Positions 13,858 to 50,094 of a stretch of 64,000 nucleotides of DNA are shown one piece after another (position 1 is the first letter of the stretch; each line of letters opens with the position of its first letter). Where the stretch lies: NCBI GenBank assembly GCA_037447605.1, contig CM074809.1:424689-488688 (forward strand), given 5' to 3'. The DNA comes from Zygnema circumcarinatum SAG 698-1b (lineage: Eukaryota; Plantae; Zygnematophyceae). A program made the position numbers and the translations under genes. The notes under the pieces were generated by a model. It was not told the origin of the DNA. It searched no databases and saw nothing but the letters and a program-made list of their open reading frames with translations.

Positions 13858-16605
13858 CTATTCCTTCCTCTCTACTCCTTCCTCTCCCCCTCCTTTCACC
13901 GTTCCCTCCTTCCCTTGCCCCTCACTCAGCCTCTCCTTCTCTTCTCCTTTCATCACCTCCGATTCCACCGGTACTTCGCTCTGCGGAACCTCTACCACCA
14001 CTTCTATCGGAGGCGCTTCCTCCAATTCGATCTCTGAAATCTTGAATATCGATATTCCGTGTGGCGCCAAGTTGAACGCTTTCACAGCGCATATAAATAC
14101 AAGACAGCAAACAAGAAAAAAAGTACAAGAAGTCCCCGCTACCACTACTGCCACTAACGTCCAGTCGACCGTCTCATTCCACCCTCCATTGGTGCGCTCC
14201 TGGCCATCAAAAGCAGGTGGAGTGGGGCAAGGGGAAGGAAACCCTGCTCCACAGAAGGCGGAGTTGTTGTAGAAAGCGGAGGCATTAAAGCGGGAAAGTG
14301 TTCCGGGAACTGCCCCGGAAAGAAAGTTGTGGGAGACATTGAAGAAGGAGAGGCTGCTATCGTTGCCTATACCCTCAGGAATGCTGCCCGTAAGGCTGTT
14401 TCTTGAGAGATCAAGGTATTGAAGCTGGAGATTGGCGATATCTTCAGGAATAGAGCCGGAGAAGTGGTTATTCGAGAGGTCGACAACTTCAAGAAAGACG
14501 TTTGAGCTGAAAGAAGGGAGTACTCCTTCGAGAGCGTTGTCACTAAGATCGACGGTTGAAAGGCTTTCTGGGAGTTCTGGAAGCGAGCCAGTTAGAAAGT
14601 TCTGCGATAAGTTGAGTCGTACAAGTGAAGGAAGCTGGAGAAGGCTCGCAGAAATATTTCCAGAGAAAGCATTCCCTGCGAGCTGAAGTGAATGAAGTCG
14701 ATTATTGCTGTTGAATACAGAAGGAAGAGGCCCTGATAAAGAGTTTTGTCTCAGATCCAAGTCAAGCAAATTATCCGCATTTGCAAGAGCGGAGGCAGGA
14801 AAAGACCCGAAAAGCCTATTGCCCTGCAGGGAGAGAGTGGTGAGGGAGGAGCTCTGTAAGAACTTGGAGTCGAGAGAGGTGTTGAAATTGTTCCAACTGA
14901 GGTCGAGTGAAAGCAGCCCTTGTAAAGTAAATAAAGAGCCCGGAATTCCACCTGTTAGCTCGTTATTGCTCAGGTCTACCTCGACTAATGCAGGAGCATT
15001 TTCAGCCAAACTTTCCGAAATAGGGCCAAGGAATCTATTGCTCGAAAGGTCGAGACTTCGAAGAGACCTCCAAGTCTTCCCCTCCGGAAGACTCCCATTG
15101 AGAGAGTTGGAACTAAGGTTTAAGCTCTGCAAGATGGGGAGGTTCCCAAGCTGAGCAATTCCGCCGGAAAGATTGTTCTCTTGCAGCCGAAGGTCAGCAA
15201 GGTTGGGGCAGTCAGAAAAGCTGGGAGGAATAGCTCCACTTAAACGGTTTCCATGCGCCCAAAAGCTGACAAGGTTCTCACAGAACAAAGAGGGAATGGG
15301 TCCTGTCAGATTGTTCGACTGAATGGTAAAATCCTGCAAGCTTTTCAACCCTGTAAACTCCCCAGGAATCTCGCCACTGAAATTGTTATCCTCCAGAGAC
15401 AAGATATTCAGCTCCTTGAGCTCACTTAGGGTTGCAGGAAGCTCCCCAGAGAGCGAATTTGAAGCAAGCGCGAGCGAAAACAGCGACCCACACTTTCCAA
15501 TTGCGGTCGGAATTTCCCCGACGAAATTGTTCGTGTGCAGGTCCAAGTACTGAATTAAGGGCCGCGAATTCTCGCAGAGCTTGGTAAGAAACTCGCTGAT
15601 GTTTCCTGAGAGGGAGTTTCCATGGACATCAAAAGTGTACCATGACCCAAAAGCAAGCTCGATGGGTAAAGGTCCTGTGAGGTTATTGGTAGAAAAGTTG
15701 ATTTCAACCCCTTGGGAATGATTCAAACGACCAAACTCCGCCGGAATGCTCCCGTTCAAGTTGTTGTCACTGAGGCTCAAATCTTTGAGAGTCGAAATTC
15801 GTGCTAAGTTTGAAGGTATGGGCCCCACCAAGTTCATGAACTCAAAGTGAACAATGGACAAGTTTTGGGGCCACAAAAACCCATCTCCCGGAAGGGTCGA
15901 AATCTCCAAATTGAAGAGGTTGTTGATCCAAACCTCTTGCAAGTTCGTGAGGTTTTGTAGCCATGGCGGAAACCTCCCCGTGAAGCTATTGCCGGTGAGA
16001 AACAGATGTTGGAGTGAAGTTAGGTTCCCAAGAGGGAGCTCATGCAACTTGCCGGTGAAGTTGTTGGTGGTGAGATCGAGAGATTGAAGGCCATGCATGT
16101 GAGCAATGGCTCCCAAGTCTCCCCCAATATTTTGTCCACCCAATGTGAGGGTCTCTAGGGAGGTCATGTTGGCCCAGCTCTTGGGAATGTGGCCGGACAA
16201 GAAGTTGTTGGAGAGGTCGAGGTCGCGGAGGAGAGGGAGAGAGGAGAGAGAGGGAGGGAGGGTGCCATGGAGGCCGGAGGAGAGAGAGAGGGAGAGGACT
16301 CGTACGGAGCCGTCGGAAGCTTCGCCGCAGGTGACGCCCTCCCAGCAGCACGCCGCCGAGGACTCGCTCACATTCCAAGTGGCGAGCTCGCCCTCGTTTA
16401 AGTCAAAGCTTGACTTTGCCGCGAGGAGGGTCTGGACGTCGGCGGGGGAGAGCGCCAAGCTACAGCTTGCGGTGACTTTATCGAAAAAGAGGGGGAGGAG
16501 GAGGGAAAGGAAGGTGAGGAGAGGGAGAGGGAGAGGGAGAGGCTTAGGTCGACGGGGATGGAGCGGTATTGGGAGGGGAAGGGAGGGAGGAGCAGGAGCA
16601 GCCAT
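13858..16605 (-). CDS. Single-exon LRR receptor-like protein (~915 aa): signal peptide, LRRNT, plant LRR array, TM, short acidic tail, no kinase
   Basis: Lies within ORF 13858-16836; the likely start is the Met at 16605 (MAAPAPP...LLTFLSLLLPLFF). LRRNT CCWEGVTC, many LxxLxLxxNxLsGxIP repeats, cap FYNNSAFCG, TM WTLVAVVVAGTSCTFFLVCCLVFICAV, Glu-rich tail to stop. Confidence 0.9.
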   Translation of the reverse strand: MAAPAPPSLPLPIPLHPRRPKPLPLPLPLLTFLSLLLPLFFDKVTASCSLALSPADVQTLLAAKSSFDLNEGELATWNVSESSAACCWEGVTCGEASDGSVRVLSLSLSSGLHGTLPPSLSSLPLLRDLDLSNNFLSGHIPKSWANMTSLETLTLGGQNIGGDLGAIAHMHGLQSLDLTTNNFTGKLHELPLGNLTSLQHLFLTGNSFTGRFPPWLQNLTNLQEVWINNLFNLEISTLPGDGFLWPQNLSIVHFEFMNLVGPIPSNLARISTLKDLSLSDNNLNGSIPAEFGRLNHSQGVEINFSTNNLTGPLPIELAFGSWYTFDVHGNSLSGNISEFLTKLCENSRPLIQYLDLHTNNFVGEIPTAIGKCGSLFSLALASNSLSGELPATLSELKELNILSLEDNNFSGEIPGEFTGLKSLQDFTIQSNNLTGPIPSLFCENLVSFWAHGNRLSGAIPPSFSDCPNLADLRLQENNLSGGIAQLGNLPILQSLNLSSNSLNGSLPEGKTWRSLRSLDLSSNRFLGPISESLAENAPALVEVDLSNNELTGGIPGSLFTLQGLLSLDLSWNNFNTSLDSKFLQSSSLTTLSLQGNRLFGSFPASALANADNLLDLDLRQNSLSGPLPSVFNSNNRLHSLQLAGNAFSGNISASLLQLPSLVRLNLSQNFLTGSLPELPESLSTVDLSDNALEGVLPSFSSNVFLEVVDLSNNHFSGSIPEDIANLQLQYLDLSRNSLTGSIPEGIGNDSSLSFFNVSHNFLSGAVPGTLSRFNASAFYNNSAFCGAGFPSPCPTPPAFDGQERTNGGWNETVDWTLVAVVVAGTSCTFFLVCCLVFICAVKAFNLAPHGISIFKISEIELEEAPPIEVVVEVPQSEVPVESEVMKGEEKERLSEGQGKEGTVKGGGEEGVERKE

Positions 16606-18113
16606 GGCTGTGGGGGAGTGCGGAGGGCGAGAGAGGGTGCGGGGAGGGAGGGAGGGAGGGAGGGAGGGAGGGAGGGAGGGAGGGAGGGAGGGAGGGAGGG
16701 AGGGAGGGAGGGAGGGGAGGGAGGGAGGGGAAGGGGAGGGAGAAGAGGGTCCGAGGACGGACGTCACCAAGCGGCGGCATGACGCCAGCAGCCATGGGCC
16801 GCGGGCGGCCTGGCATAAAGCGGCGCCGGTAATCACGTTGGCCGGCGACGGCGGCCGTATGGTTTGACCGTACTATTTTGTCGTTACGGTCTCAATTGGC
16901 CAACCGTTAGCCCTATTAAGGGATCAACTACCATTAAAGCCAATCAAAATGTGCCACGTGGAAACAAAGTAGGTACTAGGGACACGTCGCGATTTGAAGA
17001 AAATTTTGCGCGATCTCTCCGTACGAGAGGGACTAGGGGAGGGACTTCCTCCACAGGTGTCGGGGATGCCATCTGGTGACGTGACAGACTGCGATTCGCT
17101 CCGCGTAGCGGGGGACCGTACAGCGGAGACCCGCCCGAGAAGTCGGCGGAGGCTGAGGATGACGACAAGTTTTTGGCAAAAATATGGATGAGTTTTCGGG
17201 GAAAGTTCCGGCCGGGTTTTGGAGAAATGGTTTTTGTTGGGTCGCGGTTTGGCAGACAGAGGCTCCCAATAATAATAGTTTCGATTCTGTCCTTTTTAGA
17301 ACATCAGGGCTATGGTACTGATCTGGAGAAATCAAAGGCAGCACCGCGGTTTGCGTTTTAATACGGTATCGTGAGAGGTACAAGTACGTATTTTGAATTT
17401 TTATTGTTTTCGAAGTATTTTCGAAAATTGATGCATACGACCACTTATTTTGGGAAAAAAACAAAAAAAAGGGGAAAACTAGCTGCCGTCAGTAACCATT
17501 TTGCTGACGTCTTCGTTTCCGGCTGATGATAGACGGTCTCATTTGTCGTATTCAGGGGGAGAAAAAAACAAGTGTGCACGACCGCCGGCCGCAGGGCATT
17601 AAGTAATTGATTTCTGTCGTTTTGGCTGACAATTTGTCGGCATTACATTTAACGGTGCCGCCCACTTGCCAGTTTCCCCCTGACGGCTCCTGAGCGGCCG
17701 TACATAAACGTCATGATACGCTTTGACCCATATTCTTGTACTCTAAGCTGAGCCGTCCATGACCATGTCGGTTCAATCTGACCCGTCCGTTCATCCACGA
17801 ACGTTCGCAAGCTGCCGGCCCAAGTTGTAAATTCGAACGGCCGTCCGTACGTCCCCATAGGTCCAAACTCCCCTATGAGACAAAACTCACCACGTGGACC
17901 AATAACGTCTGACTCGCCGATTGCCGAACTCCCTCGATAATTTCAACCGTTGACCGTCAGTTTGGTCAATGCACACGTGCGGGAGCCCAGCCAATCAGGG
18001 GCCCACGTATTCTCCGGTTTTTTGTCGCGCAGCGCATCTTGAATTCTTGATCGGATGACCGTTGACCGCCCGTTCCTGGCCAAGGTACGGACTACACGTT
18101 TGTCGTCCGTATA

Positions 18114-26164: not shown

Positions 26165-29100
26165 ATGGCCGCCACAATGCCTCTCCTCTCTCTCCCTCTC
26201 TTGCCGCTTCTGTTGGTCCTCACGGTCCTCACCATGGCAGGGAAGTCCGGGGAGGCTGCCACGTGTCCACAGACCCTCGTAGCGTCAGAAGCGCAGACTC
26301 TCCTGGCAGCCATGGACGACCTCGAGGACCCGCAGGGCGTGCTGGAGGACTGGACAGCTGGCAACGTCTCAGAGGCCTGCTGCTGGACAGGTGTCACGTG
26401 TTTAAAAGTTTTTGGAAAAAAGATTTTTATGGTTCAGAGTTTGGTTCTCAGCGGGCTCGACCTCAACGGGACTTTGCCTTCTGCTTTCGGGAACTTGACG
26501 AAGCTCTCTTCTATCGACTTATATTATAACAATTTCACAGGAGGAATACCTGAAAGCTGGGCCGCGCTTTCTTCTCTCCGCGACCTCAGGCTTGGAAGCA
26601 ATAAGTTGAACGGATCGTTGACCGGACTGGCGCAACTCACGAGCTTGGAGACCCTTGATCTGAGTTCAAATTTATTTTCACAAGAGATGGAGGCGGTCCC
26701 AGTGGGCAGTCTGACGAATCTCACTTTTTTAAGTCTTCAGTTCAACCTATTCTCTGGAGGGTTTCCGACATGGCTTGGAAAGCTCTCCGCATTGACCGAA
26801 TTGCACCTTGAATACAACCCTTACCTCTCTCCGTCGCTTCTTCCTATCGACTATGCCAGCTGGCCTCCTCAACTCGCTACTGCTTGTTTCAGTTCCATGA
26901 ATCTCTATGGACCCCTTCCGGACGCGCTCGCACAACTGCCTCTCCAAGACCTCGACCTCAGCGTTAACACTTTTAATGGCAGCATTCCGACGGTGTTTGG
27001 CAATTTTACCTTTATTGGTGAGACGAAACTTCGCCTTAATGACAATAATCTTACAGGAGAGGTACCCCTGGCCCTTGCAGAGGGCTCCTTTCAGACCTTA
27101 ACTTTACATGAAAACGGCTTTGTGGGAAATATTTCCAGCTTTTTGAAGGCGCTTTGTGGGGGCCCAAGCGCGAAATCACTGTACTATCTGGATCTTCATC
27201 GCAACCAGTTCAACGGCGAGATTCCATCCGAGGTCCAGAACTGCTTGAATCTTGGGACTCTCAATCTTAACGAAAACCTTCTAACTGGAGCGATTCCTCC
27301 TGAACTTGGCACCTTAACTTTGTTGGATACTCTGTCTTTGGACAATAATCGTCTGTCAGGAGAAATTCCCAAGGAGTTTTTGCGACTGACCAACCTCACT
27401 TCTTTGACATTTAGTAATAATAACATTTCTGGGTCCCTCCCGCAGCTGAACTGCTCAGAAGGAGGAGGGTTATCAGTACAGGGTGATAACAACCGCCTTT
27501 CAGGGCCACTTCCTTCATTCTCAGACTGCCCTCTTACCGTCCTTAACCTCCAAAACAATTCCCTCACTGGAAACCTTTCCGTTCTAGCAAACATGCCCAT
27601 TCTCACTAACCTCAGTCTCTCTCAAAATCTCTTCAGCGGGAGCCTTCCGGCAGTCGAGGATTGGAAAGCACTGGAAACACTTGATCTATCTTTGAATAAT
27701 TTCACTTCCAGAATCCCAACGAGTTTAGGCCTCCATAGCCCCAGTTTGAGCAGTATGAACTTCAGCAGGAATGCATTGACTGGCAGCATCCCCAGGACTC
27801 TCTTTCTGCCTCCCTCTCTTCAATCGATCGACCTCAGCTACAATAATCTCACTTCTCCCCTTGACCCGAGCTTTCTAAACAGCACCTCGCTGACCACGTT
27901 CTACCTCCAAGGCAATCAGATTTCTGGGCCATTACCAGAGAGGGGGCTCCTGGTTGCCAATAGCTTATTGGATTTGAACCTCAGTGACAATTTCCTGTCT
28001 GGCCCCCTCCCTTCAAACTTTAGTGTAGTGAACCGTATCAAAACCCTAAACCTCGGAAGTAACGCCTTCTACGGGGCCATTCCGCCAAGTCTCGCGGACC
28101 TGACCACGCTTGTGACGCTTAACCTGTCAAAGAATGCCTTCAACAACTCCATTCCGAATCTCCTCTCACAGAATCTGAAACTGTTGGACCTCAGCGAGAA
28201 CTCCTTCTCGGGTGAATTGCCATCTTTCAGCGGCTCCTCCTCCCTCCAGTATATGGACCTTTCCTCTAACAACCTCTCGGGCTCCATCCCGACCAACTAC
28301 TCCCTCTTCAGCAGCCTCCAACACCTCGACCTCTCCGACAACGACCTCAGCGGCAGCCTTCCAGAGGGGCTGGGCGACCTCTCCTCCCTCACCTTCATCG
28401 ACCTTTCGAACAACCTTCTTTCCGGCCCCCTCCCTGCCAACCTCTCCCGCTTCAACGCCTCCTCTTTCAGCGGCAATGCGGGGCTCTGCGGCGCCCTGTT
28501 GGCCTCGCCCTGCGCGGCCACTCCTCCCCCGCCGAGCCCCTCCGCCGCGGGGGATGATGGGCTCTCCGGAGGCGCAATTGGGGGGATCGCAGTGGGGGCA
28601 GCGGCGGGCCTGCTTTTGCTTGCGGTGGGGGTCTGTCTCTTTGTTTGGAGGAATAAGAGGAGGTCGTCTGAAGATGAGGAGCAGGTAGAGGTGCGAGTGG
28701 ACGGGGCATTCAGCGTTTCGCCTCAAGGGGTTTTCCGCATTTTCGAGAATGCAAGGCTCAGCATTGACGACATTGTTCAAGCGACGGGGAATTTCAGTTC
28801 GAAACATCTTTTGGGGACAGGCGGGTTTGGGTCTGTCTACAAGTAAGCACCTTCAATATTGGCATGCTTGCAATTTTTAACTCTGCATAGTTGGGTTCGG
28901 ATTGTCTCTGATCTTTCTTGAAGTTGCATTCTCTGTATTCAAAAGGAGAGAAATGCATGCGATTCAGAGAAGCTGTGCTGATATCAGCCCTATTTGCTGT
29001 GATGCAGAGCGGCAGTATCAGACGATGAGGTGTATGCCGTGAAGCGGCTCGCTCAGGGCAGCACGCAGGGAGATGCTGAGTTCCGAGCGGAGATGGAAAC

Positions 29101-29782
29101 ATTGGGAAAAGTTCGACACAACCACTTGGTGACGTTAGTTGCGAGCTATAACGACCCCTCTGCAAATGAATGCCTCCTCATCTACAACTTCCTCCCGGGC
29201 GGAAACCTCGACTCGCTGCTCAAGAAGGGAGTGGACTGGTCGACTCGCCTCAATGTCGCCATAGGAGCCGCGAGAGGGCTCAAATACCTCCATCACGACT
29301 GCATCCCTTACATCATCCACCGAGACATGAAGCCCGGAAACATCCTCATGGACGAGGACATGGAAGCGCATGTTGCGGATTTCGGGTTGGCGAAGGTAGT
29401 TGACCTCAAAAAGACCCATATTTCCACAAAGCTGTTGGGGACGATTGGGTATTTGGCTCCGGAGTATGCGACCAAGGGCCGAGCTTCTCCAAAGAGTGAT
29501 GTGTTCGCATTCGGAGTCATTCTCCTGCAGCTTGTAAGTGGCAAGTCTCCTACTCATCCTCAGATGAGTGACGGCATGTCGGTTTGGGCTAAGACATCTC
29601 CAAAGGAGGAGGTGATTGACTCGACCTTGGCTGAGGAAGAAGAGAGCAGAAAGGAGATTCTGGCAATGCTGAAATTGGGTATTGCCTGCACTGCTCGGAA
29701 GCCGATGGATCGGCCGACTATGGAGGAAGTGCTCCATGCTTTGGAGCACTTGAGCGAGTTTGCTGCAGGGATAAAGGAATGA
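26165..29782 (+). CDS. LRR receptor-like kinase (2 exons: 26165-28842, 29008-29782); RD kinase resembling LRR-X (EMS1/BRI1/PSKR)
   Basis: Signal peptide, CCWTGVTC, continuous LRR array, FSGNAGLCG, TM GAIGGIAVGAAAGLLLLAVGVCLFVW. The intron (AA|gtaagc...gatgcag|A) joins GTGGFGSVYK to AAVSDDEVYAVKRL. Kinase motifs EFRAEMETLGKVRHNHLV, IHRDMKPGNIL, DFG, GTIGYLAPEY. Confidence 0.95.
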
Positions 29783-39680: not shown

Positions 39681-40282
39681 AGTTTGTCCGTCCTTATACT
39701 GTGTTTGCAAATTCCAAGATTTTCGCCCCATATTTGCCGAAACCATGGCGAAAATATGAGGGGTCTCTACTGTAGTTAGTTCGATGCATTATTCAGACGA
39801 AGATGATGACTTTCCTGAGAAATTTCTGACTGAAACTGAACATCACCCTTTAGTCATTAGTCAGACTCGATAGTCAGTCGAAGAAAGTGGCTTAAAGGAT
39901 GTTCTCTTTTACGGTACGGTAGTCACGCTCCCTTCGGGCCTCTGTCCCACGCCCGCGCCATCCAGTGACTCGCCGCGGCCCTTCCTGCGGGAGCCGCGGC
40001 GGGCGATAGGGACAGGCGGGGCGCTGCAAGTCCTGCAAGTCCTGCAAGTCCTTCAAGTCCCTCCCGCCTGCTTCCGCCGATGACGATGAGAAAGACGATT
40101 GGTCAATCGCCAATCAGACGCGCCCGTGAGGCGTCTCTCCTGAAAAGTCTTTTTTCACACCGCTGTGTTGCAGCGAGAGGCGCCTGGCGGGCGGGAGTAC
40201 GGTGAGGGAGGAGGGAGGAGGAGGCGGAGGAGGAGGAAGAGGAGGAGGAGGAGGAGGAGGAGGAGGAGGTGTAACGTCAGGG

Positions 40283-43200
40283 ATGAAGCGAATGGTGGCG
40301 CTTCTCCTTTGGGCGCTCCTTGTAGCGCCATGGCGGGGAGTTGCAGGTGAGGGGGGAACAGAGGGAGGGAGGGAGGGAGGGAGGGAGGGAGGGGTGTCTA
40401 TTGTCTCCTAATGTCTATTTTATTTCTTCCCTACTCTGATTCTTATCTTTCCCTTTTCAAATCGACTGTGAACAGGAGAAGGAGCTTCCCTTGAAGTGGT
40501 TCCGACAAACGCAACTCGCCGGAGCCTGCTTCCGATATCGACTGACGGTCAGCGACTGACTGCCGCTACAGGCGGATCTTAATGTCGCATTGCGTGCACG
40601 ACTCCTGCACATGCATTGATTGCTGTTCCATTGTGTCCTGTTTCCCTTTTCTTTGTTTTGTGCTTAGCTCTTGTACATTTATGTGTGTATTCATCGTTCT
40701 GCTACGAGTTTTTTTCGTGTTCCTTTATTGTTTTACATCTTTATTGTCCATATAAAGTATTGCTTCTCATTTTTCATTTTGCTTAGTCCTTGCTCGTGTT
40801 TTGTGTTTCCAAACTAAGTATGCTGCTGTCTACCATCTGGTACTAGGATTTTTTTTCTCACATTTCATTCCTATCAAGTGCTGCGCTTGATGTCTTAATC
40901 GCTATTAGGTATCATGCGCATTTCTATCTTTCAATTCCTCTCTTCATCTTTTGTTTATGTACTTGACCTTTTACCTTTTTACCCTTTTGTTACATGTATT
41001 TCACCTTCTTGTTTGTTTGTTTACTGTTGCTTGCGTGTCGTATTTGGATGTTGCTGCGTCGTTCGTTTTCTTTCAGGCAGTTGCGGGTCCGCGGCGCAGC
41101 GGCGATGCCCCGACACTTCGTGCTGCTCTCAGTACAACTGGTGCGGCTACACGGACGAGTACTGCTTGGCAGGATGCCAGACCGCGTACGGACGATGCAG
41201 TGAGTGAGCCGAGGGCAACCAACCAACCGCCCGCCTCCAAAGGCTGTCCTGTCCTGTCCTGTCCTGTTCTGTCCTGTCCTGTCCTGTCCTGTTCTGTCCT
41301 GTTCTGTCCTGTCCTGTCCTGTCCTGTCTTGTCCTGTCCTGTCCTGTCCTGTCCTGTCCTGTCCTGTCCTGTCTTGTCCTGCATGCAGGCGAGGGTGAAG
41401 GTTCTTTTTCTTTTTGGTGCTTTGGTCGACGGCTGTGCCATCGCAAGTTTTGTATAGTGACCCCTCTGCTTTACAATAACCACGAAGGCTGCACGTGTGT
41501 GAAGTGAGCTGAGAGCAGTGCTCGCAGGACTCTAGGACAGAAGGACCTACTCCAAAATGACAAAATGCATGTCGTTCGGTGTTCGGTTAATCATGATGTT
41601 CTTGTCAAATGTTGTGTCGGCGCGACCTAAAAGTACTGCAACCCATTTCAGACCGTTGAAGTTTGATTAGATTAAGCATGAACGGGATGAATCCTTTGCA
41701 CGATTCATGTGCTATTGGAGTTGAGACACTGACAAATCTTCCACTATATTGTTTTTTTTTTGTCGGCGTTCCGCCAACAACAACTCTGCAGTCTCCTCAG
41801 ATGGTAATTACCTTTCCAATTAACCTTTCGAGCTATAAGTTAATAACAAGGACTAAATAATAATGTCAATGGCTCGTGTTGAGCGTCTGTGCACCATCCG
41901 ACGGTTACGTTCTGTGAATTTTTGCTGGAGTGTTGCAGCGTTCTGAACACATTTGATGAATCTCAGGCTATACACAGGACCTATGCGGGTCCATGTGCAT
42001 GCATAGCTATGCCTAAGTTTGTGCAATCGAAGAAGAGAATATTAGGGTTCCCAAGAGGCATGCCCATCACAATCATTTGCACGGCTTTCTTGCGATGCTG
42101 CACAATCAGGCAGTTGCACCTTCTTGCAGCCGTCTGTTGAGAAGTTCACTTCCTTGAGATACGTTTTTCCATTCGAATGCATTCCATCAGCTATCTTCTT
42201 GCATAGGCATATGTGGATGGATACTTCGCAGTAGTCAGGGGAGGCTTTGGTCTCAGCCGACCATTGAAACCCTAAAGTTTAAACCTTGCCAGAGTTGCTG
42301 ATGTTTCATAACTCTGCCTCTTTCAGGTACTTGCGGACCCTCGGTGAATCTCTTCTGTCCCCGTAACTCATGCTGCTCTCAATATAACTGGTGCGGCTAC
42401 ACAAGTGACTATTGCGGGTCTGGATGTAAACCAGCGTTTGGAAGATGCGGTGGGAGGCTCTCACTCCTCCCTTCTCTCTGCAATGTCGAAGTCTATTTCT
42501 TTAGCAAATTGAGCTTTGGCGACTGCAGGAAGGTGCTATTGGCGTCTTCATGCTTTGAGGGATCACATGATTGTTGGAATCGACTGAAGATGTTCTGCTT
42601 CAAAAGAGAGAGAGGGAAAAGGTTATTGTAATCACAGATAGAGGCTATCCGCACACATGAATTACACTTTTGGGTAATGGAAGTTGACGATTCTTTTTAT
42701 TTGTCTTTGTGACAAGTTGCCATGTGCGTTTACGGTGCAGATCTACCCTCTCCACCTCCTCCGTCGCCTCCACCACCTCAGTCGTCTTCAGCAGGTACTC
42801 TTTGTGGTCTGAGTACATACACACCTCAAGAGCACACTGCGATGACTTTGGTTCTTTCAAATGACAGTCAGTTGACACACTGTTGCACTTGGCTTTTTCT
42901 TTGTCTCTCGTTCTCCTTGCTTTCTCGCTCACTCTCTCTTTCTCCTTTCCCCACTTTCTCCCATGCGCAAACTCTCGTTTTTTCCTCTCTCCCTTCTCTC
43001 TCCCTCTCTCCCTTTCTCTCTCCTCGCCCGCTCTCTACTTTACTCTCTCCTGTGCACACGCACACACATCAATTCCATGTCTTTGTGCTTGCAGTGAATC
43101 TGAAGCTCTGGACCGATACCTCAATAGGGAACTTCCTTGTCGTGCCCTCGAATTCGTTCAACGCGTGGTCTGCCGAGGGAAACAATTCTAATGTCGGAGC

Positions 43201-45030
43201 TCAAGTTCAATTTTCTGACTGTAAGTATGGCCGCACAGCTTAGTGGGATTATCACTTGAGATATCCTTAACCTGGTTCTGCCAATGCAACTTTCACAATA
43301 TTTTCGAATCTCGCTTTATGTGGCGACAACTTTTTCTGCCCCTTAACATGCAGCATGCATGCGATTTCGTCGACATGCATTTCTTTGTCTCGCTTTCGAT
43401 GCGTATAATTCATTGTTTCTGAACAAAGAAGCTCTGTTGCGATTGCAGATCCTGACGGATTTGATGGTAACGTCGGAGCCCTGTGGTTCCTCAACAAGGT
43501 CGGAAGCGCTTACTCTTTTCAGCAAACGCGGGGAACGTGTTTGGATGTTCCAGGAGGTAGCACAGATGTTGGCACAATCTTGACTATATGGAGTGAGCTT
43601 CTGCCCTGGTTCAAACCAATACACAAGACATAATTGAGCTCTCTTCGTCCTATACAGAGTTTACGCTATCTGGATATTTGAGTTGATCACTTGGACCTGA
43701 AACAGTTTTAAGATACGGAAAGGATAACACGTGGGCAGTGGAAGAATCGTCCAGATGCGTTTCTTAAGGATTCCTTGAATGTTGTTGACTAGTCTTAGAC
43801 GCTGGTGCTATTCTCAAATCTTTGTGTCGGTGCTATTCTCAAATCTTTGTGTCTGATGTCTATATGGGATGGCGAATGGGTTGCAGCATGCCATGGCGGT
43901 AGCAATCAGCTGTGGACGCCCATCTACAGCAGCTCTGTGGATTTCTCCGTTCAATGGCAGAACGTAAACTCCGGCTTGTGCCTCGACGCTGCCGGGTCCC
44001 GCAATGGCGATTACCTAGTTCAGTGGTATTGCAAGTCTGCCGATGCTCCCGACAACGCCAACCAGCTGTGGCTGCCACTACGCCGTACACTTGTCAACAA
44101 CTTAGCCTGTGAGTGTCCCCGTGGCTTTGAGTGAGCATGGGGGGAGTGCTGCTTGCACCGCCTGCCCTGCCCCTTGAGCGCTCGTCCCTGTCACTGTCCC
44201 TGCCCTGTGCGTGCAGCCCCGTCCGGGCTGGCGGCACCGCCCGCAGGCAGCGATATCGGCACGACGCGCCTGAACGTGCTGTCGCGGCACGCGAGCTGGA
44301 CGGACGCCCTCCCGCCCGCCGTCGACTGGTCCCCGTACTTCGGCCCCGCCAAGGACCAGGGCGCATGCGGTGCCTAAACCCTCAACCCTATACCTTAAAC
44401 CCGAAACCCGAAACCCGAAACCCGAAACCCGAAACCTTAAACCCTACACCCTAAACCCGAAACCCTAAACCCTACACCCTAAACCCTCAACCATACACCC
44501 TCCACCCTCATATCCAAAACCCTCACACCCAAAATTCTAAACCCTACACCCTAATGCCCTCAACCCTCAACCCTACTCTACCCTTCCACCCTCACATCCT
44601 AACCCCAAACCCTCAACCCTCCACCCTCACATCCTAAACCCTAAACCCTACACCCTTCACCCTCCACCCTAATGCTCTCAACCCTCAACCCTGAACTCTA
44701 CCCCTCCACCCTCACATCCTAACCCTCAACCTTCCACCCACATTTTAACCCAAAACCCTCCACCCTCACATCCTAACCCTCAACCCTCCACCCTCAACCC
44801 TCCACCTTCAACCCTCCACGCTCACATCCTAACCCAAAACTCTCAACCATACACCCTCCACCCTCACATCCTAACCCTCAACCCTCCACCCTCACATTCT
44901 AACCCTCAACCCCCCACCCTCACATTCTAACCCTCAACCCTCCACCCTCACATCCTAACCCTTAACCTTCCACCCTCACATCCTAACCCTCAACCTTCCA
45001 CCCTCACATCCTAACCCTCAACCTTCCACC

Positions 45031-45061
<31 letters not shown>

Positions 45062-45062
45062 C

Positions 45063-45094
<32 letters not shown>

Positions 45095-47409
45095 ACTCTC
45101 AACCCTCCACCTTCAACCCTCCACCATCAACTCTCCACCCTCAACCCTCCACCCTCACATCCTAACCTTCAACCCTCTACCCTCACATCCTAACCCTCAA
45201 CCCTCCACCCTCAACCCTCCACCCTCAACCATCCACCCTCCACCCTCACATTCTAACCCTTAACCCTCCACCCTCCACCCTCACACCTCCACCCTCCACC
45301 CTCACATCCTAACCCTCAACCCTCCACCCTCAACCCTCCACCCTCAACCCTCCACCGTCAACTCTCCGCCCTCAACCCTCAACCCTCCACCCTCACATCT
45401 CAACCCTCCACCCTCAACCCTCCACCATCAACCCTCCACCCTCCACCCTCACACCCTAACCCTCAACCCTCAACTCTCCACCCTCACATCCTAACCCTCC
45501 ACGCTCACAACCTAACCCTCCACCCTCCACCCTCCACCCTCCACCCTCCACCCTCCACCCTCCACCCTCCACCCTCCACTTTCCACCCTCCACCCTTACA
45601 CCCCTCCACCCTCCACCCTCAACCCTTCACCCTCAACCCTTCACCCTCAACCCTCCACCTTCCATCCTCAACCCTCCACCCTCAACCCTCCACCCTTATA
45701 CCCCTCCACCCTCCACCCTCACACTCTCCACCCTCCACCCTCCACCCTCCTCCCTCACACCCTTCACCCTCCACCCTCACATCCTGACCCTTTAACCCTA
45801 ACCCCTGCCCGGCATCCCGCAGGGTCGTGCGCGGTGTTCGCGGCGGTGGCCGCGGTGGAGGGCGCGTACGGCGTGTGGCGCGGGCCCCCCCCCGCGGCGG
45901 TCGCGCTCGCGGAGGCGCAGGTCCGGGACTGCTCCGGGGTCGGTTCGTGCCTGGGCGGGTGGCCCGCGCGCGTCCTCGACTGGCTCGCGGCGGCCTCGGG
46001 CGGCCTCGCCACGGCGACGGCGTACGGACCGTACAGCGCGCAAACGGAGGCCGCTTGCCGGGTGGGCACACATGGCTTTCCCAAGCGTGACTTTAAAGAG
46101 CTATGGCGAGTAGTGTTCCGTACTATACACCTTGAGGTTCGATACAGTGTATAATACCGTATTAATACAGTATCATACGCTGTATAATGCTCAGGTGCTA
46201 GTGTTGAGATTTGTACAATCGGACATAGATTCGTACGGAACTTTTGTATGGAAGTGTACGCAATTGTACGGATCGAGTCACACGTGTTGTGTTTAGAAAG
46301 TGACGTGAATCCTTAGTCCCTTAGCCCCTTCTACTACTTCTACTTCTTGCTGGAGGAGTATCATCATTTTGTTGTTGCTCTTCTTCTCTTATCCTTCTCA
46401 TGATGCCTTCACCGATGTAGGTAGCAGCATTACCACATGGCCCATCATCACCGTCCCCTTTGAAACTGCTCTTGTAGACCTATGTTTTCAATACAACTAT
46501 TTTGAGACTGGTATAAGGTGTCCTAGAGCTGCCTTACGGCTTGAAGCTTCAATTATTATAATCAATCTCTGTCTAACTAGCAAGAAAACGAAGAAAAGAC
46601 TTTAAATACATATAAAGTACTCTGTATTTTAAAATGTCGTATAATACATACGTATTATACAGTGTATTATAAACGCGTTTGATACATACGGATCACTTAT
46701 GGCGACCTAAACATGACCTTGTGAATATGACTGTCGTCTTTATTGACTTTATAGAGTTCATTGACCCTTTTACATGACTTCACTAGGTGCCAAATTTCAA
46801 GGCTTGACTTTATTGAGGTATTGTGTCGTCGCATGCACTCGTGCTGATCCTTGGGCCATGTCCGACGATTTGATTACGTTCTTCAGGATTTTAAGGGTTT
46901 GCGCAATCTCTAGCGTTTAGAGTATGGAAGGGAGGGGTCGTACGGTTGACTGTTCTTTTGTTCTGAAGTCACTTTGGTGGAGGGGACTCCGTGAATGCTG
47001 ATGTACTTTTTGAGCTTGTGCGGATGCTGAGCAGGCTGCGTCCGTACAGCGGACAGTGTATGTGCTGAGATATGAGCAGGTTCCTGCGTCCAATGTTTTG
47101 GCCCTCAAAGCTGCTGTCAGCCGACAGCCCGTCACAGCGTTCATAACTCTCACACAACAGCTCATGGTGTGGAACACGGTGAGAAAATAGCACCTACTTT
47201 GAACCTCTATTATCCGGGTTAAATAAATCATGGCATGGGATACCCATTTTGACTGGTCATTTCTTCAATAAGTGAACCACCATGTTTCGAAGATGAAGTC
47301 TCTGCTTGTCTTACAAGGCTTTATGTAGTATAAGTGGACTTCCATGCTGCTCACTCCATTCATTGAGATTATGCTTTAAACTATTCAAAGCATACCCTAA
47401 TTTTCTGCT

Positions 47410-47463
<54 letters not shown>

Positions 47464-50094
47464 CGCTGTGAAGTGGGACATTTTCACGGACTCAGAGGGA
47501 GCCTGCGAGGACGACTCGCAGCTGAGCCACGCCCTCGCCCTCGTCGGGTACGGCAGCGAGAGCGGCGTCGCGTATTGGATCGTACGGAACTCGTTCGGCC
47601 CCGCGTGGGGCCGCAGCGGGTACGCGCGCATCAAGCAGGGAATCTGCGGGGTCACCGCCCTGCCGGCCCTCTACCCAGTCATCTCTCGTAAGTTTCTCGC
47701 GCACGTTCTCCAAACTTAATGTTATTTTTTATATTGAATATAGGAGCTATCAAGGAGGTACAGCCTCTGCGTACACTGTTTGGATGCTGCGTAGCAACAC
47801 AACTATAGAGTATGCCAAGTTACAATTATTCGGACAACGAAAACCAGTTGTTACAAACAGAGTTTCATGACAAAGAGTTGAACGATGTGTTCCTGTCCCG
47901 TTGTTGTCCCGATAGTCGCTTGGGCTTATCTCAAGGCCCCTCTCCCTGCATGTGCAGCGCCTGACGGCAACCCCTGCAATGTGAGAATCAACCCTTGTGG
48001 GAGGGGCACCTGCATAAAGTCTGGGAATTCCTACACGTGCCAATGCCCCAGCAAGTATGTCGCTGCTCAGAATACCGACAACACGCAGACTTGCGTTCTC
48101 AGTAAGTGACTCGCATTTTATTGAATCAATTGCTTTCCTTCGTTTTTCAAACGGTACCATACTCAATACAGTTTGGTGCGCTCTCGCTCAACCCTATCCA
48201 AAACAAGCGGTCCGATCCAACTTCCATGTGCCTTTATCGAATGTCCGTTGTTGCGCTATCGCGTTTGTGGCAGAGGACGTGTGTAGCGCCACAGGCGTGA
48301 ACCCGTGCGGGGCGGGCAACTGCGTGAATGAGAACAACGGCTACTACCATTGCGTCTGCTTTGTCGGATATGTCAGTGCGGTCAACAGTGACGGCAGGCC
48401 TCTCTGTGTTCCGCGTAAGTGCTTGCACTGCTCACTTCTCCATTGTGTGTGTGTGTGGTTTGGAGTTTGGAGGCGTAGAACATGAACAAACGACTATTTA
48501 CTTCTCGGTTGGGTCGTCTTTTTCGTCATTTCTAGGCGAAATTTTGCAGCTTTCATGGTTTTATTGGATTCTGTCGTGTTGACAAAAATGAATGCTGCTG
48601 TGCAGCGGTGCAAGCGAACCCGGGATTGCCGCAGACTTACACCGTCAAGGCGGGAGATTATTGCTACTTGATCGCCTACGCTTACGGATTAACAATCACG
48701 CAACTGAAAAAACAAAACACGAGGGCCAATCGGGTACATGTGGCTGCTGCTGTAAAAGGCCAATGGAAAAGGACGTATTTTGCTGTTACTCGCACTCTTC
48801 AATGGATGTCCACTGGCAAAGCCTCAACTTTTCATTCGTCCTCATATTTTTATTCCATTTATCTTCTCGTCTTGTGTCAATGTGCAGGATCTCTGTAATC
48901 CATTGTGGATTGGTGATGTCCTGAACATTCAAAATGCAGCAGCTAAAACCTGCAAGGTTCTCTACAGCATTCAGCAGGTCCGCTTCATGCCGAAAACGCT
49001 CAAACTGCTTCTCGTTTTAAAGTAGTAAGAACGAACGCCAATCTGTATGGCCAAGATTGAACAATCAGACGCATTCTACAGTCGGAGACAGTACCTCCAT
49101 TATGACATAGAAAGAAAATCACACTGTTCTTGCTAACGCTACAAAGAATCACTGTAAATGACAGAGGTCAAATGTGTGAATGCAGGACGACTCGTGCTGG
49201 GCGATTGAAACCGCTTTCGGCCTCGCTATAGGCACCCTCGTGAAGCTGAATCCAGGACTCATATGTGACGTCACCAGCGCGCCTGATGGCACTCCTCTTG
49301 GCATTCAGCCTGGCCAGCAGGTGCAGTAATACGCCATGAACACCCCTTAAAGCGCTAACACCACCCGCCCTGAGTCCGCCTCCCCTCCCCTCCCCTCCCC
49401 TCCCNNNNNNNNNNCCTCCCCTCTCCTCCCTCCCCTCCCCTCAACGAGCGAGGGCGAGCCCCCCCCTTGCAGGTGTGCCTGGTGTTGGGGTCCCCCGACA
49501 ACACGAAGGTGTGCACGAGCGCCGATGTGGTCCTCGAGAGCGACCGCGGCAGCAAGACCTGTGCCTCCATCCTCGGGAGGACCCCCTCCTTGGCGCGCTT
49601 CGACTTCTTCGAGATCAACCGCGGCATCAACTGCGGGAACCTTTACGCGGGGCAGACGGTACGGCACGTACATCCCATGCATGCATGCATGCATGCTTGC
49701 GTACACGCATCATGCATGGGATGCACAAAGCAACCAATCACATGGCTCTTGCTTCTCTTCCCTGACATTATGCAGCAAAAGGGTATAGGATGGTGAAGGA
49801 AATGACGGGTTCTTTTGTGTGTGCTGCTGGGGAGGGCAGGTCTGCACCGGCTTCCAGGTGGTGCCTCCGGCCGCATGCAGGCCTTACTACCAGTGGCAGC
49901 GAGGGGATACATGTTCGACTGTGGCTCAGCGTTTTTGCGGGGCGAGATCGCGGCCCAAGTGGAAGAAGTGCATGGGACAAAAAACGGCTTTGTGTATCAG
50001 CTCTGGCCAGTGGGCCGTGGGGCAAGTCATCTGCGTGGTTCGACCGACGGGGTGCTTCCTTAAAACGAAGAGGGTGCCCTTTTGCATCGGCTGA
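40283..50094 (+). CDS. Secreted multidomain protein (~918 aa): SP - 2x hevein/CBM18 - Pro linker - ricin-B lectin - papain-like peptidase C1A - 2x EGF - 4x LysM
   Basis: 19 GT-AG exons join in one open frame: 40283-40346, 40476-40547, 41077-41199, 42327-42449, 42741-42794, 43095-43220, 43449-43592, 43887-44108, 44217-44369, 45823-46061, 47035-47178, 47474-47687, 47958-48101, 48274-48414, 48606-48733, 48888-48977, 49186-49320, 49473-49658, 49840-50094 (2757 nt). Motifs: CCSQYNWCG x2; CLDVPG...NQLW...CLDAAG...NQLW; LPPAVDW...KDQGACGSC, SHALALVGYG, YWIVRNSFG; two 6-Cys EGF; YTVKAGDYC and related LysM. Confidence 0.9.
41244..41381. repeat. (CTGTC)n pentanucleotide microsatellite in the intron after hevein exon 1
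   Basis: Direct read. Confidence 0.95.
44374..45805. repeat. Intronic telomere-like heptamer satellite (CCCTAAA/CCCGAAA grading to CCCTCAA/CCCTCCA, 28-nt higher-order unit)
   Basis: Direct read. Recurrent unit CCCTCCACCCTCACATCCTAACCCTCAA. Flanked by the donor at 44370 and the acceptor at 45822. Confidence 0.9.

Follow-up and report, generated by a model that had tools for sequence, protein, structure and literature searches.

The window analysed here, 64,000 nucleotides (nt) of the zygnematophyte alga Zygnema circumcarinatum SAG 698-1b (assembly GCA_037447605.1, contig CM074809.1, positions 424,689 to 488,688 of the forward strand), contains at 40283-50094 on the plus strand one transcribed gene that encodes a protein of 922 amino acids. 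From the N-terminus onward this protein has a predicted signal peptide, two hevein domains, a proline-rich stalk, a ricin-B beta-trefoil, a papain-type (C1A) protease domain, two EGF-like modules and four LysM-type repeats. The gene belongs to a little-studied family of lectin-tethered C1A proteases in algae, within which its front end is unusual. It represents no new kind of system; what it adds to the family is a head of two heveins and a ricin-B domain. We lean towards a function as an extracellular, glycan-guided endopeptidase that would act on microbes, probably in defence. No living lineage is closer to the land plants than the zygnematophytes, and how they interact with microbes has hardly been studied. 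A protease family with swappable heads (chitin lectins, a galactose-type lectin, leucine-rich repeats) and a LysM tail is a concrete, testable candidate for recognising or attacking chitin- or peptidoglycan-walled organisms, or for remodelling the alga’s own walls.

The gene model has 20 exons, which splice in one frame into 922 codons and a stop with GT-AG borders at every intron; translation starts from the first ATG in the open frame, at 40283. The first-pass annotation of this DNA, made from the sequence alone, had proposed 19 exons and about 918 amino acids. Its splicing in one frame stood and its count did not, the only difference being a 12-nt micro-exon between both hevein exons. The parts of the gene are listed below in window coordinates; Pfam scans were run exon by exon, and the contigs and joints are those of public sequencing runs described after the list.

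Exon 1, 40283-40346, plus strand: start codon and predicted signal peptide MKRMVALLLWALLVAPWRGVAG; its end is the loose contig end before exon 2 in four runs.
Exon 2, 40476-40547, plus strand: short N-terminal spacer with one N-glycosylation sequon; no match in the Pfam scan; joint to exon 3 in four runs.
Exon 3, 41077-41199, plus strand: hevein (CBM18) domain 1, phase 1-1; Chitin_bind_1, E 1.5e-10, 41.6 bits.
Exon 4, 41792-41803, plus strand: 12-nt micro-exon, linker residues between the heveins; TCTCCTCAGAT in contigs of all four runs.
Exon 5, 42327-42449, plus strand: hevein (CBM18) domain 2, phase 1-1; Chitin_bind_1, E 1.8e-10, 41.3 bits.
Exon 6, 42741-42794, plus strand: Pro/Ser-rich (extensin-like) linker, translation DLPSPPPPSPPPPQSSSA; joints on both sides in four runs.
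Exons 7-9, 43095-43220, 43449-43592 and 43887-44108, plus strand: ricin-B beta-trefoil, each phase 1-1 exon encoding roughly one lobe; joints in contigs.
Exon 10, 44217-44369, plus strand: linker with an LN..SRHAS motif, then the mature papain N-terminus (LPPAVDW) to Gln361 and Cys364, placed by homologue alignment.
Intron 10, 1453 nt, no strand: repeat array at 44373-45779, about 200 copies of a degenerate heptamer.
Exon 11, 45823-46061, plus strand: papain domain with catalytic Cys367; Peptidase_C1, E 3e-9, 37.7 bits; its start is the loose contig end behind 44370 in four runs.
Exon 12, 47035-47178, plus strand: middle of the papain domain; gap-free colinearity with P0003, P0017 and others.
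Exon 13, 47474-47687, plus strand: papain domain with His511 and Asn531; Peptidase_C1, E 3.3e-15, 57.2 bits.
Exons 14 and 15, 47958-48101 and 48274-48414, plus strand: two EGF-like modules of 6 Cys each, phase 1-1 exons.
Exons 16-18, 48606-48733, 48888-48977 and 49186-49320, plus strand: LysM 1 and LysM 2; Pfam LysM, 34.9 and 24.0 bits.
Assembly gap (N run), 49405-49414, no strand: within intron 18 (49321-49472), in a (CCCCT)n tract, by reading of the sequence.
Exon 19, 49473-49658, plus strand: LysM 3, divergent, matched by the family profile.
Exon 20, 49840-50094, plus strand: LysM 4, divergent and rich in Cys in its second half, followed by a short tail with Cys and by the stop codon.

Evidence for transcription came from public runs of the same organism. 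A search of public runs for words sampled from 47474-50094 returned five runs from two studies, which contain 0.37-0.49 of the words; the share expected for exon-only RNA of that segment is 0.41. Reads from four runs were aligned to 40200-44372 (exons 1-10), and in all four the resulting contigs are confined to exons, with a depth of 30-260 on exons and zero or about 3 on introns. The contigs contain the joints 40546/7 to 41076/7, 42448/9 to 42740/1, 42790-4 to 43091-5, 43220 to 43449, 43592 to 43887 and 44108 to 44217, and at the joint from 41199 to 42326 the micro-exon lies in between. Loose contig ends match the last letters of exon 1 and the first letters of exon 11. The joints from exon 1 to exon 11 are all as modelled in these four runs, which again come from two studies. 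Single contigs of 779 and 832 nt cover exons 1-8 and 1-9, and others cover exons 9-11. Intron 10 interrupts the active-site motif Q-G-A-C-G/S-C, so that exons 10 and 11 necessarily belong to one gene. Together the contigs and the split motif led to the rejection of a two-gene reading, and the single gene of the first-pass annotation is upheld. For exons 13-20 the support consists of the word share at the exon-only expectation and of colinearity with two transcript-derived homologues, P0003 and P0017, described below.

The N run begins 84 nt past the donor of intron 18 and ends 58 nt ahead of its acceptor. The phase-0 junction of exons 18 and 19 is free of gaps when aligned with homologues of other species (‘PGQQ|VCLVLG’ here; ‘AGLQVCLARG’, ‘KGQQVCVEKG’ and ‘PGQQICVQAG’ elsewhere). 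Since the gap is intronic and the alignment runs unbroken across the junction, the comparison with homologues indicates that the gap conceals no coding sequence that the family possesses. A frame broken by the gap was considered and rejected on the same intronic position. No start codon or signal peptide was found between the domains of the spliced model.

Relatives of the gene were sought by comparing exon 13, without a profile, with every one of 1.84 billion representative proteins. The best single-stretch match, P0003, is a protein of 812 amino acids with 65% identity over exon 13. It is encoded by an open reading frame on transcript contigs of 2.8-2.9 kb from runs SRR8128904, SRR8128905 and SRR8128907, and is open at its 5′ end behind a Pro-rich stretch. 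Like the window gene it combines in one reading frame a Pro-rich stalk, a hevein-like module, ricin-B, papain, two EGF modules and four LysM repeats, in colinear order and with a common C-terminal tail. Unlike the window gene it has one visible hevein-like module, its contig being cut 5′, and Phe in place of Tyr/Trp in the sugar-binding set. The GC content at third codon positions (GC3) of P0003 is 0.44 vs 0.71 in the window gene; this difference in codon usage places P0003 in another species and rules it out as a paralogue within the window’s genome. The study that yielded P0003 also contains P0017, with ricin-B, papain, EGF and LysM.

Three proteins of Mesotaenium endlicherianum, and proteins of Spirogloea muscicola and Closterium, contain the papain-EGF2-LysM4 body alone. 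This distribution would by itself point to a source in or close to the Zygnematophyceae. Membership in a family defined by this body was assessed with a MAFFT alignment of the window protein with P0003, P0017, P0113, P0151, P0152, P0154 and P0007, and with phmmer for each part; the protease, the two EGF modules and the four LysM repeats align colinearly. The relatives in the Zygnematophyceae are Mesotaenium ME000065S09001, ME000065S09004 and ME000110S_11032, Spirogloea SM000172S03048 and Closterium CAI5502628.1, the last with two units in one record. They share with the window protein a C1A domain without a prodomain, two EGF-like modules and four Cys-framed LysM repeats in the same order, and differ in their heads, which consist of leucine-rich repeats (LRR) in Closterium and in two Mesotaenium proteins or are absent, and are not hevein plus ricin-B. 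The Mesotaenium copies further differ in having Ser or Gly at the catalytic Cys. A suggestion that the architecture is singular is not borne out: the body is common to several zygnematophyte algae, and the hevein plus ricin-B head is present in the transcript of another species. Word-index searches with the head (residues 1-240) and the tail (456-812) of P0003 returned P0003 only, which, with the limits of the tool, is no proof of rarity. An atlas search with the body of P0003 gave only generic papain clusters, at 0.76, and its head had no significant match among PDB sequences.

Pfam results are read against cut-offs of 27.8 bits for Chitin_bind_1 (PF00187), 25.6 for RicinB_lectin_2 (PF14200), 29 for Ricin_B_lectin (PF00652), 20.7 for Peptidase_C1 (PF00112) and 20.9 for LysM, and P0003 served as proxy for full-length searches and folding. 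Both hevein exons, which are about 59% identical and cross-match in tblastn, exceed the first of these. By direct reading each contains 8 Cys and the Ser-x-Tyr-x-Trp...Tyr set of aromatic sugar-binding residues. In the ricin-B region exon 9 scored 26.1 bits with RicinB_lectin_2, above its cut-off, and 27.6 bits with Ricin_B_lectin, below its cut-off; exon 8 gave E 7e-4. The lobes of the trefoil end in GALW, NQLW and NQLW, three x-L-W motifs. Lobes 2 and 3 retain an Asp, aromatic, Asn-Gln pattern (CLDV...IW...NQLW and CLDA...QW...NQLW), as in the sugar-binding lobes of ricin B.

In one run, X4, additional contigs of ricin-B exons (43097-43552 and 43901-44013) carry a few base differences, other upstream sequence and a non-canonical joint from 43552 to 43901. 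These contigs probably derive from a close paralogue, or are chimeric.

The protease domain is, by sequence, of the C1A type and cathepsin L/H-like. Peptidase_C1 matches exons 11 and 13 above its cut-off, and Gln361, Cys367, His511 and Asn531 lie in canonical motifs, equivalent to papain Gln19, Cys25, His159 and Asn175. Cys residues occur at the aligned positions of all three papain disulfides, both here and in P0003. The entries of the PDB nearest to P0003 are the mature forms of ananain, ficin, fruit bromelain, actinidin and cathepsin H (E 1e-31 to 1e-28). The alignment of P0003 begins at the mature N-terminus of the solved proteases, and entries for proenzymes align only from that point. 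Ahead of the mature N-terminus, at 44250-44290 in exon 10, there is a motif conserved across genera, [RK/Y]-L-N-x-x-[SF]-R-H-A-S, which reads RLNVLSRHAS in the window protein, RLNAFSRHAS and KLNRFSRHAS in homologues and YLNPGFRHAS in Mesotaenium. The LN..RHAS motif is present wherever the region exists, that is in the window model, P0003, P0017 and P0152.

The EGF-like exons 14 and 15 scored 15-21 bits, below the Pfam cut-offs; the aligned EGF modules of P0017, P0151, P0152 and P0007 exceed the cut-off of PF00008. Of the LysM exons, 16 and 18 pass the Pfam cut-off, exon 20 falls below it with 14.9 bits, and exon 19 has no Pfam LysM match. Each repeat was also considered as an alignment across the family, those of repeats 3 and 4 being headed by the window’s own exon. 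In hhalign, repeat 3 matched the LysM1/2 profile at 97.8% (E 1.2e-12) and repeat 4 at 98.3% (E 1.2e-14). A LysM1/2 family profile built without the window sequence found four places in the spliced model, with E values of 4.8e-11, 2.5e-13, 2e-5 and 1.7e-5. Against solved structures the LysM profile matched fern chitinase A (E 1e-13), Cladosporium Ecp6 (E 9e-12), bacterial wall enzymes and 5k2l, the chain of which is named ‘Chitinase, lysozyme’ and the entry title of which is the LysM domain of a Volvox carteri chitinase.

The predicted fold of the P0003 LysM array has a mean predicted local distance difference test score (pLDDT) of 71 and consists of repeated beta-alpha-alpha-beta units. Its best structural match is Ecp6 with a chitin tetramer (E 2.3e-6), followed by the CEBiP and CERK1 ectodomains, and single repeats superpose on the fern chitinase LysM at 1.2-1.3 Å. 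An AlphaFold2 model of exon 20 alone shows the beta-alpha-alpha-beta order at low confidence (pLDDT 58). The Pfam matches, the profile-profile comparison and the fold of the homologous array together support four LysM-type repeats, two canonical and two divergent.

Secretion is predicted from the hydrophobicity profile. The first 22 residues are the sole strongly hydrophobic stretch of the protein and contain the only 19-residue window with a Kyte-Doolittle hydrophobicity above 1.6; by this threshold and by reading, a basic stretch is followed by a hydrophobic core and an end of small residues. No further window in the 922-residue model exceeded the threshold. Because the N-terminus alone does so, the profile fits an N-terminal signal peptide and a secreted protein with no transmembrane segment. 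At this point much of what had first been read from the DNA can be endorsed: the predicted signal peptide without a transmembrane segment, from the hydrophobicity profile of the spliced model; both heveins with 8 Cys and the S-x-Y-x-W...Y set, from direct reading; the retention of Gln, Cys, His and Asn by the protease, from the motifs and the alignment of homologues; and the combination of two heveins, ricin-B, papain, EGF-like and LysM domains in one gene, from the model, Pfam and the contigs.

The closest described systems include chitinases tagged with hevein or LysM (class I chitinases, the fern chitinase A and the Volvox chitinase). They are targeted in a like manner, a CBM18 or LysM domain docking the hydrolase onto chitin, and these proteins are the nearest relatives of the window gene’s LysM repeats. 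They differ in that the hydrolase there is a glycosidase and here a protease, and in that three lectin types are combined here. The apoplastic papain-like cysteine proteases of land plants share the catalytic domain and catalytic residues; unlike the window protein they possess an I29 prodomain and lack lectin modules. In a 21-species survey of lectin architectures, C1A is listed with LysM only in Chlamydomonas and is not listed with hevein or ricin-B; the survey states that vascular plants did not retain combinations of C1A and lectin (PMC6362431, Table S3). The Chlamydomonas proteins are secreted green-algal proteins that join a papain-family protease to two or three LysM domains, and differ from the window protein in the absence of hevein or ricin-B beside C1A (PMC6362431). 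A simpler fusion of a chitin-binding domain with a cysteine protease in Volvox had been named in the first-pass annotation; as a precedent, a C1A protease with LysM is borne out for Chlamydomonas. No Chlamydomonas or Volvox C1A-LysM protein was among the best 150 matches to exon 13. We found no paper on the zygnematophyte papain-EGF-LysM family, and the Zygnema genome paper and one paper on domain evolution are silent on this architecture.

A lectin-guided protease is a reasonable idea for a protein of this composition. The protein would act outside the cell as a glycan-targeted endopeptidase. Its hevein and LysM domains would dock it onto polymers of N-acetylglucosamine (GlcNAc), either the chitin of chytrids and fungi or bacterial peptidoglycan; this reading is suggested because the LysM repeats are nearest to chitin-binding LysMs and the heveins keep their aromatic set. 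The ricin-B domain may contribute a second specificity, probably of galactose type, and the tethered protease would then cut the wall or secreted proteins of the microbe. The parallels are the lectin-tagged chitinases and the apoplastic papain-like proteases of land plants.

Several observations weigh against a glycan-guided, catalytically active enzyme encoded as modelled. The joints between exons 11 and 20, exon 18/19 included, were not observed directly, the reads having been aligned to 40200-44372. The library type of the runs is unrecorded, and their identity as RNA was deduced from intron-less contigs and run size. Lobe 1 of the ricin-B domain is without the sugar-binding Asp, and LysM 3 and 4 are divergent in the window gene. 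Beside the active site the window protein has Ala and Phe where papain has Trp26 and Trp177. C1A enzymes normally need an I29 prodomain for folding and latency. No Inhibitor_I29 match was obtained in any exon or in the homologues examined, and from the trefoil to the start of mature papain there are only about 40 residues. The protein is a natural case of a papain-family domain without the usual prodomain, which raises the question of how it is folded and restrained. In Mesotaenium P0152, P0151 and P0154 the catalytic Cys is replaced by Ser (CGASWAF) or Gly, while His and Asn are retained; for this reason catalysis is not essential family-wide, and these three proteins may be pseudo-proteases or Ser-type variants. 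P0017 has Ser at the position of Asn175.

The alternative that holds up best, though we consider it unlikely, is a protease of the alga’s own wall or matrix. The lectins would then bind galactans of its arabinogalactan-proteins (ricin-B) or its GlcNAc-bearing glycoproteins, and the enzyme would remodel hydroxyproline-rich wall proteins or mucilage when cells grow, separate or conjugate. The extensin-like Pro/Ser stalk is in keeping with such a role. So is a Volvox cysteine protease with chitin-binding, LysM-type domains, which is reportedly induced by the sex pheromone and by wounding (Amon et al., Plant Cell, 1998). Against it, the hevein domains and the nearest relatives of the LysM repeats are chitin binders, and zygnematophyte walls are not known to contain chitin. 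The LRR heads of the relatives also look more like devices for the recognition of foreign ligands or proteins.

It is less probable still that the protein is mainly a lectin or pattern-binding scaffold that agglutinates microbes or signals, its papain domain being latent, non-catalytic or a binding or decoy module. The missing prodomain, the two Trp replacements and the substitutions in Mesotaenium and P0017 speak for such a protein. The window gene and P0003, however, keep Gln, Cys, His and Asn and the Cys residues of three disulfides, which argues for retained catalysis. An artefact of two or more adjacent genes, or of mis-assembly across the gap, is barely credible: the gap, the 1.4-kb repeat array in intron 10 and joints 11-20, absent from the reads, would permit it, but the spanning contigs, the split active-site motif, the intronic position of the gap, the lack of internal starts or signal peptides and the colinearity of the whole model with single-frame transcripts of another species all stand against it.

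The extracellular, microbe-directed protease that we favour belongs to a family in which heads appear to be exchanged. The two heveins, the Pro-rich stalk, the three trefoil lobes and the two EGF modules each occupy a phase 1-1 exon of their own, and the protease-LysM body has mixed exon phases. The symmetric exons, the variety of heads that the body carries in other species and the identity of about 59% within the hevein pair fit exchange of heads by exon shuffling together with tandem duplication of exons. More speculative, and in our judgement rather doubtful, is the further idea that phase-1 shuffling places interchangeable heads (LRR, hevein arrays, ricin-B) on one protease-EGF-LysM body so that the proteins diversify in the manner of immune receptors. 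If that were true, each paralogue would deliver the protease to a different microbial surface pattern, an immune strategy unlike the receptor kinases of land plants.

The release of elicitors for neighbouring receptors, which the first-pass annotation had offered as another role, found no support beyond the presence of LRR-kinase genes in the same window. Two long exons, at 13858-16836 (minus strand) and 26165-29782 (plus strand), encode LRR ectodomains of 991 and 893 amino acids; a protein kinase exon comes after the second, and LRR receptor kinase genes thus share the window with the protease gene.

The non-coding parts of the gene contain several repeats. The array in intron 10 (44373-45779) consists of a degenerate heptamer, CCTCAAC / CCCTCCA, with a period of 7 and 200.7 copies by Tandem Repeats Finder; plant-telomere-like CCCTAAA units occur at its 5′ end, and its GC skew is about -0.97. 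Intron 11 includes at 46142-46671 a stretch of about 530 nt flanked by AT-rich overlapping palindromes (ATACAGTGTATAATAC...), which may be a small mobile element. A (CTGTC)28 microsatellite lies in intron 3 at 41244-41381, and in the 5′ leader a (GGA)21 tract (40207-40269) stands immediately upstream of the start codon.

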